From Thalia democratica (Eukaryota), in the NCBI GenBank assembly GCA_965202585.1, contig OZ241827.1, positions 55,242,001 through 55,306,000 of the forward strand: a DNA stretch of 64,000 nt, in the 5' to 3' direction. Under the pieces are notes generated by a model that ran no database searches, was not told the DNA's origin, and saw only the letters and a list, made by a program, of their open reading frames with translations. This document shows positions 1 through 47,193 of this stretch, piece by piece. A program made the position numbers and the translations under genes. Every line of letters begins with the position of its first letter. The first letter of the stretch is position 1.

Positions 1-7690
<7,690 letters not shown>

Positions 7691-9586: not shown

Positions 9587-9630
9587 CTCTGCGATCTGGT
9601 TTCGTCCTCATTAGGACTCATCAGGCAGAA
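9587..9630 (-). ncRNA. Minimal type I hammerhead ribozyme, stem III slightly degenerate
   Basis: Minus strand: TTCTGC-CTGATGA-GTCCT(AATG)AGGAC-GAA-ACCAGAT-C-GCAGAG. Stem I has 5 WC pairs plus a wobble, stem II is a perfect 5 bp, the core is intact, and stem III has a C/A mismatch. Confidence 0.75.
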
Positions 9631-10152
9631 ATGACTACGATGAATCGTTGTCTCAGTCAAAATCTTGATTAAGTACTTTCGCACCGATGAACCATAAACA
9701 TTACCCAGTCAATAGCTTTTTTAAATATACTAAGAAAACTTTTATATAAATCTAAACATAACAAATGTTTGTTAGTTCGATCGTAATTTAAAATTTAAAC
9801 TTTTTAAGTTTTTATGTTTTAGATAAATATGAATTTCATCTAAACTTTTGACTTGTAGCATACTATATTTTTTAGATAGTACATAATTTAAAAAAATTGA
9901 ATAAGCAACATATAAGTTTTTGTTTTCATGCAAGAATAAGTTTTAATTATCATGTAAACAGATGTTAGAGTACAGTTCACTATTTTGTTAATTGTTTGAC
10001 AAAGCCAATTTTTTTCGAAACCAGTCACAAATAAAATAGAATTAAAAAAAAACTTTATTATTTAAATATATAAACATACACAATTATTACGTACTTAAAA
10101 AAAAAGAAATCAGTAAAAAATATTAAAAAAAAAACTGCATACACTTCTTACG

Positions 10153-11739
10153 ATGAAGTTGAAACTACTTCTACTCGTCATCTTGTATGTTTGTTCCGTC
10201 GAGTGCCAGATCAGAGGGGGGCGGAACGCGAGGGAGTGGGAAGCACCGCACCAGGCCCTCGTCGAAATCGGCAGGTTCAGGGAAGGGGGTTACCAGGAAG
10301 TGAGAAGGACTGTTTGCGGGGGAATTTTGCTGAACAAGAGGTGGGTGCTGACGGCGGCGAGTTGCGTCAGGGGTGGGGACGCCCACGACAGGGTCTGGAG
10401 GAACGAGGTGGTGCAGGTGACGGTGGGGACCAGGTACCGGGGAAACAACCAAAACAAGGACCGGGACAGACAGACGAGGAGGGTATCGAAAACTTTTCTG
10501 CACGAAAACTTCTGGCCCGGTGGGGGCGAGGAAGACGTGGCGCTGCTGCTGATGGACCGGGAAGTGCGGTACAACGGTCAGACGCGACCCGCGCTGCTCG
10601 CTCACAAGGAAAAGGAAGCAGAGAAGGGATGGAAGTGCCGCATATCCGGGTTCGGCGCTTTCGACCCAACTGGTAAAAATCTTTACCCTGCATCACTTAA
10701 AGTCGCTACTGACTTGAAAGTGGTGAAAGACAAGCATTGCGAGGCCAGCTTCGGGGTCAAGAGTCTCGGAAATAGGTTTTGCTACGCTAGCGCCAACGAA
10801 GACAAAGTACAAAGCAGCGGGAAAGGCGACTCCGGAGGTCCCGTGGTTTGCGACGAGGACCGGGGAACGGGCCAGGTCGTCCACGGAGTGATGAGCGGCG
10901 AGGGGGGCGATTGCCAAGGCACAAAAAAATCCCCTTGCGCCGCCGCGAAGGTCTCCCGCTACGTCGACTGGATCGACCAGGTGGTCAGGTCTGAGACGCC
11001 GAGCATGACTGTCAGGCAGCAAGGAAACGATGCCAATGTGGGGGACGCCCCCCACCACGTTGCCATGGTGAAGCACTCGAGCCGGCGCGTCGTTCTGGCA
11101 ACGTGCCAGGGGGCGGTCGTAGGCGAGATGTGGGTGCTCACCGCGGCGAGCTGCGTCGGCAGGAACAGCGACAAAGGCGAGTTCATCACCGTCAAGTCCG
11201 GTATTTTTAGAAACCGGGTGGATAGTGGAAAATCGTTCGAATGGTACCAGCACCCGATGTACAGCGAAAAAGAAGTTTCGGACGAAAACAACGTCGCGTT
11301 GGTGCGCTTGAATCGGAAAATAAGCGGCGACGACATTAAACCGATCAGCTTGATCGCTGCCGATCGCGCGAAAAACTGCAAGGTTTCCAGCTTTGAGGAA
11401 GAAGACGAGGAAGCGGGCGTGCTGCAGGTGCGGAAGGTGGACGTAATTGAAGATAGGAAGTGCAGGTCGCCCGCGCTGAAGCCGGCGGCAATGAGCAAAA
11501 TGGCGGGAAGACACGTTTGCGCGCAGCAGGAGAAAGGGAGGGCTTCGATCAGCGTGGGAGAGGGGTCGGCGCTGGTTTGCGAGGATTCGAGAGGAGTGAA
11601 GGGAGTTTTCGGGGTGGCGTCGTTCGGAGGGGAGTGGGAACGCGTCGGGGGAGGCGCCGGGCCGAAAGTGTTCACGAAAATTCACGGAAGCAATTTTGAG
11701 TGGATTCGTCAACACGTGGAAAGGAAAGGAGAACTGTGA
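10153..11739 (+). CDS. Secreted intronless protein with two tandem trypsin-fold (S1) domains; serine protease homologue, catalytic His replaced
   Basis: 528-aa ORF with a hydrophobic signal peptide then QIRGG. Domain 1: VCGGILL, WVLTAASC, EDVALL, CRISGFG, GKGDSGGPVVC. Domain 2: CQGAVV, WVLTAASC, NNVALV, no GDSGGP. Confidence 0.9.
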   Translation: MKLKLLLLVILYVCSVECQIRGGRNAREWEAPHQALVEIGRFREGGYQEVRRTVCGGILLNKRWVLTAASCVRGGDAHDRVWRNEVVQVTVGTRYRGNNQNKDRDRQTRRVSKTFLHENFWPGGGEEDVALLLMDREVRYNGQTRPALLAHKEKEAEKGWKCRISGFGAFDPTGKNLYPASLKVATDLKVVKDKHCEASFGVKSLGNRFCYASANEDKVQSSGKGDSGGPVVCDEDRGTGQVVHGVMSGEGGDCQGTKKSPCAAAKVSRYVDWIDQVVRSETPSMTVRQQGNDANVGDAPHHVAMVKHSSRRVVLATCQGAVVGEMWVLTAASCVGRNSDKGEFITVKSGIFRNRVDSGKSFEWYQHPMYSEKEVSDENNVALVRLNRKISGDDIKPISLIAADRAKNCKVSSFEEEDEEAGVLQVRKVDVIEDRKCRSPALKPAAMSKMAGRHVCAQQEKGRASISVGEGSALVCEDSRGVKGVFGVASFGGEWERVGGGAGPKVFTKIHGSNFEWIRQHVERKGEL

Positions 11740-11754: not shown

Positions 11755-12149
11755 CATTAACAAGTAATAAAATTAGCAGAAAAACTAGGCTTGGTCGCGA
11801 ATAAAATAATAAGCATGTTAAAACTTTCAGATTCTGTCATGTAAAAGTAAAACAAATCAAATAAGACTATAATATATTATTTTGATTTAAAAAGTGTTTT
11901 TGTAAATGTATTAAAAGCAATTGTTTAATATTTTTTCTGCACAACTTTGATTTTATATAAGCTGTTTTACTATTGCCAAAAAAATATATATCGCCTCCTG
12001 TTGTCCATTTTTTAATGACCCTAGGTGTTGCGGTAGATAATATACTCATGATGAAAAGAGTTTTTTCGGCTGTACCAACAAACAAACACTTAAGTGTTAA
12101 TGCACTCAGAACGTTTTGTTTGACTAATAAAGCGGTTCATGTAAGTATG

Positions 12150-12191
12150 TCAGCCTGATGAGTCCTGATAAGGGCGAGACCAGGTCTCAGA
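12150..12191 (+). ncRNA. Degenerate hammerhead ribozyme, same family as 9587-9630
   Basis: TCAGC-CTGATGA-GTCCT(GATA)AGGGC-GAG-ACCAGGT-C-TCAGA. Stems II and III and the GTC triplet are intact, but GAAA is changed to GAGA and stem I has two mismatches. Similarity to the 9.6-kb copy extends about 90 nt, including GCGGTTCA 66-67 nt after the core start. Confidence 0.65.
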
Positions 12192-20570: not shown

Positions 20571-21503
20571 ACTTATAGAAAACAACCTGTTAGATGAAAA
20601 GATACTTATTTATAACTTAAAAAAATTGTATTGTTTTATACACATTTAATTTTATTTTAATAGCTTTATAACTGTATTGATCAAAAACTAAACACTTAAA
20701 GAATAAAAAAAATTGTTTTTTAGCTGTGAAAACTAGTGAAGTAACTTAAGCAATAGTTTATAGCTGATATACAATATATATGGGGTTAAAAAAGGTTGCG
20801 CAATTCAGAATATAAAATTCAAATTCTAATATTTCTAAGTTAAAATTAATTATATTTTTATTTTTTAAACAATTTCAATCTTTTTTATTAGACCTACACG
20901 AACATTTATTTTGGCCCTTTAAACTTTTTTACCAGAATCAAAATTGTCAGAAATAGAACTGTTGTAATTTGAATTGTCATGTAACCCAGGTTTACTGGTA
21001 TTGGCCATTAAAAATTCAAAATCTCCTTCAACTTGTAGTATGCAAATTACTGGGTTAAAAACTAACCTAAGAGGGGTGAGACGTGACTAGCTAAGGAGCC
21101 ATATGGGGGTACTTAGATAGAATCAAAAGAAAATCAAAAACTACACTAGATACCCTGGGGTTTGTAATAAAACAGCAAAAAAGGTCTTAATTATATTTAA
21201 CAAGAAATGTGAAAGCTACACTAGATATTGTTATACTTAAAGAGAAAATCAAAATTACAAGATATTCTCAGGTTGGTAATGAGTAGGAACAATCATTTCT
21301 TAATTTTCTGAAAAAGTTTATGAAAATGAGTCCAGGAAACCCTGTTTTATGGTTAACTCATTTTTATAAAAACTTACACTGACTGCTAAATGAAAGTGTA
21401 AGTTACAAGTTAGTTATAAGGTAACAAAGTTTAAATTAACTTTTAAGATATGAAAAAATTCAAAAAGTTTTGGCTTTTTGAGTTTTCTGTCTACTTTATT
21501 AGG

Positions 21504-21995
21504 GTTGATCATGCCAATTCCTTAATAAGGACGAAACCGGTCTCAGTCTACCGAAACTTGTGGTCTGATGATCGAATTGGCATGATCAGCCCTTTTGTTA
21601 AATTTGAGCTTGTCTCACGGCAAACGAAAGTCCGGACTTGTTCTGCAGACTTTCGCCGATTTTGTTGATTGTACTAAAACGAGCGTACCAGATGTCTTGC
21701 CTAGTGGACAATGTTTTAAACGTTGCACGGCAAAGACAATGCTGATCACTAATCATTGCCAGCAAATGGTTGCTTCATGCGAAAGCATGATAAACCGTTT
21801 GTAGATTGACGACTACAAGTTTTTCGGTTGTGACTGACTGATGAGTCCTAATAAGGACGAAACCGGTCTCAGTCTACCGAAACTTGTGGTCTGATGATTG
21901 AATTGGCATGATCAACCCTTTTGTTAAATTTGAACTTGTCTCACGGCAAACGAAAGTCCGGACTTGTTCTGCAGACTTTTGCCGATTTTGTTGAT
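21504..21995 (+). mobile_element. Retrozyme-like non-autonomous retroelement: about 1.45 tandem copies of a 326-nt hammerhead unit with 5' inversion and TSD
   Basis: Direct repeat with period 326 (21520-~21669 vs 21846-~21995). 21502-21520 is the exact reverse complement of 21900-21918. Flanks are TCTACTTTATTAGG (21490-21503) and TCTACTTCATTAGG (21996-22009), 13/14 identical. An intact HHR lies at the unit junction. Confidence 0.85.
21832..21874 (+). ncRNA. Intact minimal type I hammerhead ribozyme
   Basis: GACTGA-CTGATGA-GTCCT(AATA)AGGAC-GAA-ACCGGT-C-TCAGTC: perfect 6-bp stem I, perfect 5-bp stem II, palindromic stem III, GTC cleavage after C21868. Stem I extends further (CGGT/ACCG, GACTACAAG/CTTGTGGTC). 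Confidence 0.93.
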
Positions 21996-22956
21996 TCTAC
22001 TTCATTAGGAAATTAAAAATTACTATAAACGGGTCTACTTTTTATTTTTCGAGCTAAAAACCACAAATTTATAAGAATTATTTTTAATAGTTTTAAAGAT
22101 TCAATTTGTTCTACTTTAAACTAAAATTTATTAAATGTATTTAGAGAATTTAAAAAAAAAGGATAGTCATTTAATAACATTTTTTTTTGAAGTTAATAAA
22201 ATAATTTTTGTTATTTATTGAAACATGAGTGATGAAAAGTAATAACAGGTTTATATTTAAACAGTCTTATTTAGTTTTTAGATTGTGCCTTCAATATGAA
22301 GCTTATTAAAATCACTTTTAATTGGACTTGTATATTTATTTTCCAATTCTTATTAAATTATATACAACAATCTTGATCACTAGTATCAAAAGGAAATTAA
22401 ATAATGGCATTGTTTTCTTTTTTAAATAACTTGCCTACTATACTACTATTTGTTATAGAGTATAGGACATTTATTTGAATCCCTACGCAATGACCTCCAA
22501 AGTGAAAACATTTCTAATTATAAGCCAGATTTATAAGAATAAACCTTTTCGTGTCTGGTCTTTTTAAATTTATAACAAAGTGCTTCAATGTTATTTATTT
22601 TAAACAAAAAAAAATGTAATCAAATTTTTAGAAAAAAATTAAATAAGTTAATACCATCCATGACAAAGTAAGTTAGTTAGAATTATTTGACAGACAGTAA
22701 ATTAGATAAACAAAAAACGAATTGAAAATGGTAACAATATAATACATATATTCAGCAAATCTTTAAACCTGTTCAAGTCAAAAGTTATTTTGATATAAAG
22801 CTTACACTGACTTGTTCATATGCTGAAATATTTCAAAACCTACAAAATAGACTTTTTATCACCTTAGTCAGATTTAGTGCAAGTTCTTATAATTGCTTTA
22901 AATATACTCAGTTGCAGTTAAAGATGATTGTAACTATGAGTTGCTAAAGAATTATT

Positions 22957-28186: not shown

Positions 28187-29263
28187 TCAAAAAAAAAGTA
28201 ACAGTTGTGATTCTTTACAAACAAAAATTCTTTTCAATTTATCAATTGTTGTACAATCTCCTTCCTCCGTAAAAAGCTGCTCCTGCTGCAGTACCCACCG
28301 CAAAAAAAAAGTCCCCAAAAATTTTCTCACTTTTCTCACTTTCAACCCAACCCTGTCTCTAATCGTCAATTCCTCCTTACCTTTCCACCCGTCGATCCAA
28401 TGAAGTATGTTTCCGATCAGCAGCCCACTACCCGGAGCGCCAGAGGAGCATTTTCTCCTAATGTCATCGCATCCGAACGCGTGAATTGCGACGACGGCGC
28501 CTTCCAGAGGGGATTCCCCTTCGCCGAGAGCGCACGTGATTGGAGCACCAGAGTCGCCCTTGCCCGTCATCGCGCACCTTCCCGACTGGCAGCCGTAGCA
28601 GAGGTGATGGTGCGAGCTGTGGGGAAACTTGCACTTTTCGTGCGGCAAGACCTCGACCTCGCCCTGCATGGCGCGATCCGGTTTCGATTCGGGGAATTCC
28701 AGTTTTTCGTCCCACGGGTTCTCCCCCATTTTGACGACGACCTCGTATTGGGAAGTCCCCCATCCCGCAACGACGCATTTCGCGCCAACCGGCACGACTT
28801 CGCCGGGAAGGAGAAATTTTTGTGCTTGCTCGACCGTGTCGCTTTCTTTCAGCGGCTCCCTGAGGAAGACCAAAGCGGCGTCGTGCCTCCGGTCCTTGTC
28901 GGGGAGGTACTTCTCGTGCACGACCACGTCCTTCGTTTCCACCTTCCGGCGCTGAGCGTTTTCTCTCACGTCGTTTTTGTCCTTGGTCCCCGCCACCACG
29001 AGAATATTGTACGGGGAATACTCGAGGGAGTTTTCATGGTACACGTCGAAGTTGTGGGCTGCGGTCAGGATCCACCTCATGTTTATTATCAAACCCCCGC
29101 CTGTATATTCCACTTCGTTCCCGCTCTTTTTGTTCAATGAATCGACCCGGATGTAGACCAGGTATTTCAGCTTGCCGGCGTCGGCTGGTTCGCCTTCGAG
29201 TACTTGAGCCGTTGTTGAATAAATTGTCGCAAGCAAAATAAACAAACTATACGTTGAACACAT
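28187..29263 (-). CDS. Secreted intronless trypsin-fold (S1) serine protease with intact His-Asp-Ser triad and a C-terminal extension
   Basis: Likely start MCSTYSLFILLATIYSTTA at 29263 (signal peptide), then QVLEGEPA, WILTAAHNF, HDAALVFL, CVVAGWG, GKGDSGAPITC. The ORF track also allows an upstream ATG at 29305. Confidence 0.88.
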   Translation of the reverse strand: MCSTYSLFILLATIYSTTAQVLEGEPADAGKLKYLVYIRVDSLNKKSGNEVEYTGGGLIINMRWILTAAHNFDVYHENSLEYSPYNILVVAGTKDKNDVRENAQRRKVETKDVVVHEKYLPDKDRRHDAALVFLREPLKESDTVEQAQKFLLPGEVVPVGAKCVVAGWGTSQYEVVVKMGENPWDEKLEFPESKPDRAMQGEVEVLPHEKCKFPHSSHHHLCYGCQSGRCAMTGKGDSGAPITCALGEGESPLEGAVVAIHAFGCDDIRRKCSSGAPGSGLLIGNILHWIDGWKGKEELTIRDRVGLKVRKVRKFLGTFFLRWVLQQEQLFTEEGDCTTIDKLKRIFVCKESQLLLFF

Positions 29264-32200
29264 TGTTTTTAATTGATAACACAAATTAGGACATTTCAAG
29301 AACATTTTTTTTTACTTTTTAAATATCTATTTTAATCAACAGGTATGACGCACTTGTATCAAAGGTTTTTTAACAAAATTTTTCGTTAATTTAAAGGTCG
29401 GCAAACTTTTAAGTAAAAAAATATTTTGTATAAAAAATATCCTTCTTGGGTCGTAGCCGTTCAAATAAATTGTATCGTAGCAATCAAAAAGATTTATTTT
29501 CAACTACCAATGTGATAAAAACAGAACTAATAAAACACTTGTAACTACTAAACTAACAGTCTAATTGTAAGTTTTTCCACATATTTTCTATTGTTGTTAA
29601 TGAACTTATAAAATTTTTCCTTATGGAGTTTTTCATCAACATCGGTGCACATTTGCAGTTACGCACCGAATCAGTATAGTGAGTAATAACATGTACTTTC
29701 CTAACTTGTCACTAATTGGTGTTCAAAATTTCGTTTAACTTTTTGAATACTAGATAAACATAGTTGAAAAAAGGCAAATTAAGCAGAAAAATAAACTATA
29801 AAGGATAAAGATATTACATTCTTTTTTTTACATTTTTTTTTGGGTGGCACGCATGCGCCAGTGTCCCTCCCCACGCTACGCCCCTGCTTTACACTACTAA
29901 CAAAACAGATCTTTTTTTTTTCCTATGTCTAAAAACAGCTAAGGTTTGTATTGTAAAATATTAAATAAAAAAACGATACTGAAAGTAAATTAATAAAATA
30001 TCTAAACTTTTGTATAACATTTAATACCGAAAGATTTCAAAAGCCATGAAATTCCTCTTTCGTAAAAAATTTGAAGAATTTTATTACTACTTAATCGCTA
30101 ATAACCTATGTTCTATTTGGTCTCTTAAAACTAAAACTAGATATGGTAAATCTATTCTTTTAAAAAGATACGATTAGTGGTAATTTTTTTTCAAACATTT
30201 TTAATGTTTAACACTGTCATAGATAAAAAGTTTTGATATAAGTTTCAAAGTTTTCATATTTTTACTAAAGTGTTTTGTTATACGGTAGTATTGTTAGTTT
30301 TAATGCTGTAAATCATAACGAATATTTTTTAATTAAGTTAAAAAATTCCTAGTTAACAAAAAGTGAAAAACGCGTAAAAATTTTCAATAAGTTCAAATCA
30401 CATAAAAGATAGTAACTGCGAACAGAGTAAACCGAAAATAAACTAGTTTCTGTTCAGTAGAATCTCTAAAAACATATTTAAGTTTTTTTGTAAAACTGTT
30501 TTTTTTGTTTTGTAAAAACTTTCCATTTATTTTTATTTGTTTTTCAATTAACAAAATTAAAACTAAATTCTAAACATACAAAAACAACCCATGTCAAGCT
30601 TATTTACTGTTAAAAACTTTAAAAACCTATTTTGTATAAGCAAAGTTTTCTTGCACACAACCTTAAGTTGTTATCTATAAAAATTTAAAAACGAAAAAAT
30701 ACAAAGTTTATTATAAAACGTATGAAATGCCCTTTTTGAAATTTTTTTTATAAAACTTAGAAGTTGTGAAAACTACTTAAAAAACTTAACAATTGTAATT
30801 ATTCTGTATATTTGAAAACTCAAAGAAGGTTTTGAGGAACAGACGTTTAAAATGTAAGTATAGTTGTATTTATCAAAAACGTATGTTTGTTTGATAACAT
30901 TAAGTTTAACTAGTCTGTTTTATTTTTTAAAAATAGGTTGATGTAAAATATTTCCAGTCAATAGCATATATAAATTTAATATTTTTTCATAAATTTCAAT
31001 AACATAATAAATCAATATTTTAAAACTATGTAATTTTGACATAATAAAATAAATGTTTATTTTTTTAAAGTATCTTTCTATGTTAAATAGTTTTTTTCTA
31101 TAAGCCAACTTAGAGTTTGAAAAACTATATACATTATTTATTCTTTAATTGTACATCACACTACTAAAATATTAAAAAAATGTAGCTTTACTTAGCAATA
31201 TCGTTTTTTTGTAACAATTTAAACTATGAAAACTTTTTGATTTTCGTTTACTTTAGTAAGTGTTAGTATGGTTCGTTTACTTATAATTTATTGTCTATTA
31301 TGAACACATACCACGTTTAACAATGACGTATATATGCAAAGATAAAAAAAAATAGTGCGTAGGTGTTAAATATAGTATAAAATTTGTTCATAGTATATTT
31401 TTATTCGAAATAAAAGTAAACTTTTAATATTAATAAAACTAAACACATTTAGTAAAAAAAATCATACTTAAGCTTCGTTAAAAAAATTAGCAGTAGTTTT
31501 TTCACATAGAAATAAGAAATAGTTTTTATTAGACATTTTTTTTATAATTACTATAAAAGGATTTAACCTTATGTAGAATAATTTCGTTTCAGTTTAATTT
31601 AATATGTTATAAATAATATTATTAATTTGAAAAAAAAAGATGAGCGATAAAATATACGATCAAAGGTTGTTTTATTTAGTAAAACTAAATTTCATGCTCT
31701 ACCCAGTTTTTAGTTTCTAATAAGTAGGGTACTTATGATATAAATAAAAGTTTTTTAAGAAAAGACAATAATTATTAACTTAAAACAAGGTTAACTTTAT
31801 TAATATTTATACCAAAAAAAAACTTTCAAAAACATTAGCATCTAGTATTTAAAAGTAAATTACGAAGCTTTTTACTGGTGTACTTTTCAATGTCAGCTCT
31901 ATAAAGTATTAATAAATATAGTAACTTTTCTTATACAGAATTAATATGTTTTCTAAGGCAAATTGAAAGGCAATCTGTTTGAAATTTTTTTTAAAATTAA
32001 TTTTTAAATTGTTTTTAAAAAAAATTAGTAAGCTTTTAAGTTCTATTTAGGAAATTTATAAATATCTAACATATTAATTTTAATTCTTAAAAAAAGAAAT
32101 TGAATTTTAATTTTTTAATTAAGAACACTTTATTTAGTAGGTAAAACCCAAGTGAATACTGTAAATATTTACAAAATAACTTTTTCTTTAAAATTAAAAA

Positions 32201-46605: not shown

Positions 46606-47193
46606 TCAAATGGTTAAATTGGAAAATCCATGTTCCAATTGGTCAGAAGATGGCTTCATGGCCAACAGAGACTGTACGTAATTCTGCCTTCTGATCTGGT
46701 GCCCCCTTGCCTTTTCAAAACTTTCAACAGCGTATTCAGGGTTGATTCCTTTGACTCTTATTAAATAACTGCAAACCATAAAACCGGTTCTGTTCAATCC
46801 ATGTGTGCAGTGAACCAGAACTATTTTGTTGTTGTCTCTGTTTGCATTTTCAAACTCCTCTATGACATCACAGAACATTTTTATGTACTTTTCCCCTGGA
46901 ACCTTCTGGCCAAGTACCATGATCTTCTTCACAGTGATCCCTTTGCTTTCAAAGTCACTGGTGTCATAGTACTTGTCAGTGGCGCACAGGTTGACCACCA
47001 ACCCCACTCTTAAGTACATTTTGTTTTGAACAATGTCCACTGCGTCATGTACACTGAACTTGTCACTTTCACTGGAGATTTTGAACTCGGGTTTCAGCGG
47101 GACCCTCATGGCAATGATGTTAGAGTTTTCCACAATCTCTCCCATTTTTGAGTACTTTAGCCAGCCCTGTGGAATAGCATATTTACTTGGCAT
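46606..47193 (-). CDS. DUSP11: DUSP11/PIR1-like RNA 5'-triphosphatase (cysteine phosphatase fold), intronless
   Basis: 195 aa; IPQGWLKY, IIAMRVPLK, VVNLCATDKYY, active-site VHCTHGLNRTGF, FEKARGHQIRRQNY. Confidence 0.85.
   Translation of the reverse strand: MPSKYAIPQGWLKYSKMGEIVENSNIIAMRVPLKPEFKISSESDKFSVHDAVDIVQNKMYLRVGLVVNLCATDKYYDTSDFESKGITVKKIMVLGQKVPGEKYIKMFCDVIEEFENANRDNNKIVLVHCTHGLNRTGFMVCSYLIRVKGINPEYAVESFEKARGHQIRRQNYVQSLLAMKPSSDQLEHGFSNLTI

Follow-up and report, generated by a model that had tools for sequence, protein, structure and literature searches.

A probable non-LTR retrozyme copy placed by Penelope-type double priming in the genome of Thalia democratica

A stretch of 64,000 nt from the genome of Thalia democratica (assembly GCA_965202585.1, contig OZ241827.1, positions 55,242,001 to 55,306,000), hereafter called the window, harbors at positions 21490-22009 a short non-coding insert with a hammerhead ribozyme. 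With a probability of roughly 0.85, we interpret this insert as a copy of a retrozyme without long terminal repeats (non-LTR retrozyme) which was placed by Penelope-like machinery through double priming. The identification as a non-LTR retrozyme is based on the presence of every defining sequence feature of such elements in animals, namely a type I hammerhead, short (~150-450 bp) non-coding head-to-tail units without LTR, primer binding site or polypurine tract, low GC content, and dispersed copies with target-site duplications of more than 4 bp. The unit lacks the open reading frame (ORF) for reverse transcriptase (RT) and GIY-YIG that characterizes autonomous Penelope-like elements (PLEs), and its insertion displays the partial tandem, the adjacent inverted 5′-truncated copy and the one-ended tail of Penelope-type integration.

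Animal non-LTR retrozymes have been described as non-coding units that measure 170-400 nt and each contain a single type I hammerhead (Cervera & de la Pena 2020, PMC7229834), and the retrozyme concept, including the target-primed copying of circles and PLEs as mobilisers, has been published. An initial annotation, made from the letters of the window alone, had read the insert as the reverse transcript of a circular or multimeric RNA and named a Penelope family as candidate partner; this is the existing model for animal retrozymes (PMC7229834; preprint 10.64898/2026.07.22.740005). For PLE insertions, the known hallmarks are partial tandems, an adjacent inverted 5′-truncated copy and a one-ended tail (Craig et al. 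2021, PMC8557442). Penelope elements carry minimal hammerhead ribozymes (min-HHRs), which have no helix III and a helix II of 7-8 bp (PMC4209133).

Results

Architecture of the insert

Four parts make up the insert: 19 nt in inverted orientation, 20 nt left over from a unit, one full unit of 326 nt and 133 nt of a further, partial unit (Table 1). The head-to-tail arrangement of non-coding 326-nt units given in the initial annotation (~490 bp, 1.45 copies) is borne out by a direct repeat of 153 nt with 97% identity and a spacing of 326 (21523-21675 / 21849-22001), the tandem portion amounting to 479 nt or 1.47 units. The 14-bp flanking repeats and the 19-nt inversion at the 5′ end, both described there as well, were found again, the former with 13 of 14 positions matching and the latter as a perfect reverse complement. 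Two filler bases separate the end of the inverted arm at 21520 from the start of the unit remnant at 21523, and at its outer end this arm overlaps the duplication by 2 nt. Five of the first 6 nt of the downstream duplication equal the unit, a match which represents the priming microhomology. Between the two overlapping 153-nt parts there are four differences (4/153), all of them transitions and two located at CpG; on the basis of these internal differences and the single mismatch in the target duplication, the window copy is slightly older than the family generally.

Coding potential is nil, the longest stop-free run in a unit trimer being 72 codons, and the G+C content is 43% in the unit and 29% in the window. 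Searches of the insert for tRNAs and Rfam families revealed no tRNA and no Rfam family besides the hammerhead. Tandem Repeats Finder reported nothing for the insert, because 1.47 copies of a 326-nt period lie under its threshold. Contigs from DNA runs stop ~35 nt before the insert, and a joint of 21503 to 22010, as an empty site would give, is absent among the matches listed.

The hammerhead ribozyme

The hammerhead at 21820-21890 spans the unit junction, with all catalytic core positions readable and the predicted cut between C21868 and T21869. Its score of 38.8 bits falls under the gathering score of 52 of Rfam HH9, since the helix III loop of the model is absent here. The initial annotation had placed a minimal hammerhead at the junction with a cut after C21868. 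The complete core agrees with the position; the assignment to the minimal form does not hold. Judged from its helices, the ribozyme is the canonical metazoan type I form and not the helix-III-less min-HHR of Penelope elements, as it retains a helix III of one A-U pair with CCGG and its helix II has 5 bp. The site at C21542, previously named as equivalent, is indeed equivalent in sequence, but the upstream copy there begins only at unit position 307, so that neither the CUGAUGA box nor the 5′ strand of helix I or of helix II is present. Therefore, the locus has a single complete ribozyme, and from its sequence it would be unable to excise or release a monomer by itself. Since a helix III of 1 bp is unstable and the CCGG loop is palindromic, cutting is expected mainly when two copies pair; by analogy with a known precedent (PMC4209133), cleavage of the window ribozyme should thus be dimer-dependent. 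The fold predicted for the unit RNA has an energy of -111 kcal/mol (z=-6.3 vs shuffles), with helix I closing the molecule.

Size, age and distribution of the family

In the host genome of ~800 Mb, a search with the unit yielded 2,352 first-look candidates, and the 186 that were scored showed 94-100% identity, most of them 98-99%. A 24-nt pattern across the cut site gave 2,420 genomic matches vs 0 for the reversed control, and in same-species DNA runs the summed word depth was 1e5-1e6 over the unit vs ~44 per haplotype on the flanks. Most genomic copies have a unit length of 328 nt, the window copy 326 nt. The mean difference among 69 full units from 37 insertions was 1.85 nt (~0.6%). Because of the high identity, the thousands of junctions and the word depth, the family is regarded as very young and very abundant. 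Exact-core searches, sorted by the base after the cut, resulted in only two large groups, both of them short-unit families.

The unit sequence is also present in marine samples; a scan of JGI metagenomes for the unit junction returned 0 matches. In runs X9-X12, which are labelled as four other organisms, 50-72% of the insert 31-mers are present, implying ~98-99% identity, together with at most 5% of the 31-mers of the insert flanks. The explanation is either conservation or recent exchange of the retrozyme among close relatives, or else a set of labels that are near-synonyms. The same-species DNA run X7 contains two contigs of equal depth for window positions 20976-21455, representing haplotypes which over 475 nt are separated by 31 substitutions and 9 gaps; this difference of ~6% is a very high heterozygosity. 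Variants of the second X7 haplotype are carried by run X9, labelled as another organism. Furthermore, an identical minus/plus pair of unit junctions 156 nt apart recurs at four places (G000:C1:7203428/7203584, 7212572/7212728, 8506119/8506275 and 8849614/8849770), the result either of segmental duplication of one insertion or of a composite that recurs.

Anatomy of dissected insertions

The 37 best-scoring insertions were dissected. Nearly all of 35 insertions examined are flanked by target duplications of ~9-15 bp, and since nearly every copy has its own duplication, each insertion is independent. As the initial annotation had anticipated, the copies form a dispersed family with different start points and target duplications. 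Two termini are used. T1 lies at positions 51-71 past the cut site (median 57.5, n=30 arms) and T2 at positions 124-138 (median 130, n=31 arms), each downstream of a TTTTGTT motif and with an exact end that moves with the target microhomology. Head-to-head pairs of arms make up two thirds of the insertions, and 25 of 26 two-arm insertions have one T1 and one T2 end (P~3e-8 under independent choice); one-arm insertions comprise 5 with T1 and 5 with T2. The segment between the termini, unit positions ~56-130, constitutes the “tail”, which in the window copy is missing from the end of the inverted arm. This copy follows the family pattern exactly, with a 19-nt T1 arm and a T2 arm of 1.47 units.

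The arms are 0.1-4.4 units long, and all units in them are contiguous, 326-328 nt in length and perfectly joined from position 326 to 1. Their 5′ (inner) ends vary, 37 of 61 falling into positions 244-326 (P=7e-9). By single-unit BLAST, 13 of the 61 arms seemed to start exactly at the ribozyme cut site; this was recognized as a query-boundary artefact, as the arms run 1-16 nt further upstream. The arms are joined at short microhomologies, twice at perfect palindromes (GACCGGTC in L068 and GACGTC in L063). Opposite arms within one insertion show 0.79 differences vs 1.85 between units of different insertions. The claim of a retrotransposed insert is therefore well founded, given the dispersed family with its own duplications and variable 5′ ends, and a 5′ inversion combined with a partial tandem is the mark left by Penelope-like integration (PMC8557442).

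A sister family

A pattern search gave 1,277 matches to a second retrozyme family, whose unit is 327 nt long (L083-L085; G000:C1:6598200-6599800 and others). The 31-nt ribozyme core is identical between both families, the rest of the unit being 62.6% identical over 206 nt. Both strands of helix I differ (GACUGA/UCAGUC vs UCCUGC/GUAGGA), and 6 pairs still form. Because helix I has fully covaried while the body of the unit is only 62.6% identical, this covariation, the best such evidence in the present analysis, suggests that the ribozyme has been retained by selection. Family-2 insertions end near 59 and at 108-117, most with one of each. Young copies of this family are 99-100% identical, and many older fragments of 80-90% occur (L049-L060).

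Penelope-like elements in the genome

Within the window, an ABC-transporter-like gene with exons visible around 2130-6700 contains in one intron a 5′-truncated PLE copy from a family here called PLE-A. This copy has a left inverted arm (4201-4471) without tail and a right direct arm (4450-5533) with a 33-nt tail. Elsewhere, the PLE-A family possesses intact ORFs of 827 aa that combine RVT_1 with GIY-YIG at the C-terminus, in a unit of 2,686 bp. A genome search gave more than 9,000 first-look candidates, most scored matches being 95-100% identical at the protein level, and the family looks currently active. PLE-A copies end at two sites 33-40 nt apart, were heterotypic in 7/7 two-arm copies and have duplications of 7-11 bp. 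A Penelope element 16 kb away had been proposed as partner of the insert. Since it makes the same insertion architecture, PLE-A is a candidate enzyme source for the retrozyme, separate from the insert; it has neither a hammerhead nor similarity to the unit.

At least three further RT/GIY-YIG families exist (L081, L082, L086-L089), with open frames of 561-964 aa. A 3′ end or pseudo-LTR (pLTR) sequence common to the retrozyme and PLE families A-D was not found at significance, the only likeness being a loose U/G-rich motif near the ends. In this genome, the non-coding families seem to be the only carriers of hammerheads. A CUGAAGA...GAAA string in the non-coding region of PLE-A was considered as a hammerhead and dropped for want of a credible helix II. 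Perfect head-to-head joints of Penelope-like arms (L088 1024-1179; L043 3963-4027) score as Rfam microRNA precursors with up to 61 bits; the insertion mechanism creates long hairpins at these joints, which are not microRNA genes.

RNA libraries

Four marine RNA libraries contain contigs of the unit only and none of the flanks. These data are assembler contigs, not reads, and so contain no read ends. One contig of 358 nt (328+30) has the length resulting from a closed 328-nt cycle with 31-mers, although a tandem array gives the same length. A putative circular retrozyme RNA is plausible.

Features of the window

Table 1. Positions of the retrozyme insert, its ribozyme and related elements in the window
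Feature	Position	Strand	Basis or remark
Upstream target-site duplication, 14 bp (TCTACTTTATTAGG)	21490-21503		Repeat comparison
Inverted arm, 19 nt	21502-21520	-	Perfect reverse complement of 21901-21919 (unit positions 33-51); outer end is the short terminus T1
5′-truncated unit remnant, unit positions 307-326	21523-21542	+	3′ half of hammerhead only; no catalytic box
Full unit, 326 nt, cut site to cut site	21543-21868	+	Sequence comparison
Partial downstream unit, positions 1-133	21869-22001	+	Sequence comparison; ends at the long terminus T2
Downstream target-site duplication (TCTACTTCATTAGG)	21996-22009		13/14 match to upstream 14-mer
Complete type I hammerhead, extended helix I	21820-21890	+	Rfam HH9, 38.8 bits, E=3.6e-8
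Helix I, 6 bp	21832-21837 paired with 21869-21874	+	Sequence reading; a second 6-bp segment extends the helix
CUGAUGA box	21838-21844	+	Sequence reading
Helix II, 5 bp, AAUA loop	21845-21858	+	Sequence reading
GAAA	21859-21862	+	Sequence reading
Helix III, one A-U pair (U21867) closing palindromic CCGG loop	CCGG 21863-21866	+	Sequence reading
C21868, predicted cut directly 3′	21868	+	Sequence reading
PLE-A copy, 5′-truncated, in intron of ABC-transporter-like gene	4201-5533	+	GIY-YIG ORF 4551-5267
Decayed retrozyme relative, hammerhead with damaged helix III and cut site (...CGAAACCAGATC)	9593-9624	-	69% to unit over ~100 nt (9598-9695)
Decayed retrozyme relative, 39-nt fragment of ribozyme 3′ half	12148-12186	+	82% identity

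In addition, the window carries ordinary host genes, among them two single-ORF genes for trypsin-like serine proteases at 10153-11739 (+) and 28187-29305 (-) and a dual-specificity phosphatase ORF at 46606-47193 (-).

Discussion

Probable Penelope-type integration of the retrozyme

That one end is tailed and the other untailed, a rule common to two retrozyme families and the coding PLE-A, is direct genomic evidence for Penelope-type integration of retrozymes. From this DNA outcome, the following steps can be reconstructed. A staggered cut would leave two 3′ overhangs of ~9-15 nt, each of which would anneal by a few bases to the sense-strand retrozyme RNA and prime reverse transcription. One overhang would prime at the T2 window (~124-138) and the other at the T1 window (~51-71), both after UUUUGUU; in the predicted fold, these windows flank a structured segment at ~63-125. 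Both cDNAs would cross one or more unit boundaries, so that the template would have to be multimeric or circular. The two cDNAs would then be joined at short microhomologies or palindromes and filled in, the product being head-to-head partial tandems inside a target duplication. According to the published cycle (PMC7229834), the ribozyme presumably trims the multimeric transcripts from loci with several units to monomers, which could be ligated into circles.

Several observations weigh against this interpretation. The dissected insertions, having been chosen by score, are biased toward the youngest copies. Among them, L070, an insertion with two arms, has T2 together with an end at position 24. 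In family 2, the copy L083 ends at 73 and 59. Base-by-base extension detected no arm starting at position 1 among 61, so there is no genomic trace of ribozyme-cut 5′ ends; as the arms continue past the cut site, the templates were continuous there and thus uncut multimers or ligated circles. The RNA-library contigs could stem from contaminating DNA. With regard to the proposed enzyme source, Rfam detected no hammerhead in PLE-A, which also has no similarity to the retrozyme unit, and no canonical hammerhead in the stretches read of the further RT/GIY-YIG families. When both retrozyme units were compared by BLAST with PLE families A, B, C and D and with an old relative of A, nothing was significant, the best match being 38 nt with 71% identity (E=0.39). 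These PLE families were sampled at one to three copies each. Finally, in Xenopus retrozymes and pLTRs are related in sequence, and local amplification is envisaged for the former (10.64898/2026.07.22.740005), whereas here no parent pLTR was found and the copies are dispersed with their own duplications.

Alternative explanations

The best surviving alternative, which we nevertheless consider unlikely, is that the unit is the pLTR of an unsampled autonomous PLE with a hammerhead and that the short copies derive from it by extreme 5′ truncation or internal deletion. PLE insertions are heavily 5′-truncated and leave solo terminal repeats, and only one to three copies of the four PLE families were inspected. 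In addition, a 4.3-kb contig from a DNA run of a close relative is ~92% identical to the ribozyme region at 1444-1551. The anatomy of the insertions argues against such a parent, as all 37 consist of contiguous units with perfect 326-to-1 joints and up to 4.4 units per arm, and none of them has an ORF interrupting the units. Moreover, the exact-core searches resulted in short-unit families alone, and the core occurs in no sampled PLE.

Another possibility is a short interspersed element (SINE)-like unit moved by the non-Penelope RT of a long interspersed element (LINE), with the inversion arising from ordinary twin priming. In L1 twin priming, both target 3′ ends prime on the sense RNA and the cDNAs are joined at microhomology, which is generally known to yield 5′ inversions. 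Here, in contrast, the second priming site is fixed and always different from the first, and both arms may span several units. The TTTT run in both termini could be taken for a Pol III terminator. As the two ends are situated 3-14 nt past these T runs, Pol III termination was discarded as their source. No poly(A), A-rich or microsatellite tail was found at the dissected insertions, and there is no tRNA, 5S or 7SL head. As multi-unit arms and the obligatory tail asymmetry fit the co-resident PLE and the published PLE features rather than LINE insertions, this explanation is very improbable. Least probable of all, to the point of being negligible, is a satellite DNA with a hammerhead, comparable to newt satellite 2, that was dispersed by recombination or segmental duplication instead of reverse transcription: head-to-tail units with a dimer-type hammerhead do resemble classical satellites and a few loci of contig C1 recur with the identical 156-nt spacing, but the arrays are short (0.1-4.4 units) and occupy thousands of dispersed sites, each with its own duplication and truncation point.

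Comparison with known systems

With the animal non-LTR retrozymes (PMC7229834), the retrozyme shares short tandem arrays, a GC content below 50% (43% here), duplications of more than 4 bp, a highly self-paired predicted RNA and the co-residence with PLEs, the proposed mobilisers. It differs in that most insertions are head-to-head pairs with two fixed termini, for which those accounts give no description. Furthermore, the invertebrate retrozymes tested in that study cut efficiently as monomers, whereas the helix III found here predicts dimer dependence, as in the axolotl. Like newt satellite 2 and the min-HHRs of PLEs (PMC4209133), the ribozyme has a short helix III with a palindromic loop, and two copies can build an extended helix III; unlike the min-HHRs, its layout is canonical, with a helix I of 6 bp plus a second 6-bp segment and a 5-bp helix II.

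With PLEs (PMC8557442), the insertions have in common the partial tandems, the inverted 5′-truncated copy, the one-ended tail, variable duplications and heavy 5′ truncation. In contrast to PLEs, the retrozyme has no RT/GIY-YIG ORF, and its tail measures ~75 nt instead of 30-40. The unit has no sequence in common with the four PLE families sampled here, which are themselves without canonical hammerheads. A co-occurrence of retrozymes and PLEs was likewise reported by Li, Clavereau & Pollet 2026 (10.64898/2026.07.22.740005), who view retrozymes as non-autonomous relatives of PLEs.

Significance

The family described here belongs to the kind described in 2020 and adds a member, not a concept. In the published retrozyme and PLE accounts compared, we found neither the full Penelope signature of retrozyme insertions, including one tailed and one untailed end, nor a Penelope-type retrozyme insertion lacking a hammerhead-bearing coding partner (among the families sampled). 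Up to now, co-occurrence and, for frogs, related sequences had been the basis of the link between retrozymes and Penelope. As a tentative generalization, with the odds judged to be against it, Penelope integration might be obligately asymmetric, the two target 3′ ends priming at two different fixed sites of one RNA which flank a structured segment, and this would explain both the “tail” and the inverted 5′ copy; at the same time, the hammerhead retrozymes of this genome might be mobilised in trans by hammerhead-less PLEs, the ribozyme serving template processing and not enzyme recognition.

Marine metatranscriptomes may contain “viroid-like” hammerhead RNAs of 328 nt, and the family is a likely origin of these. 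With thousands of near-identical fresh copies beside an equally young autonomous PLE family, it offers clean junctions for reading the integration mechanism of PLEs.

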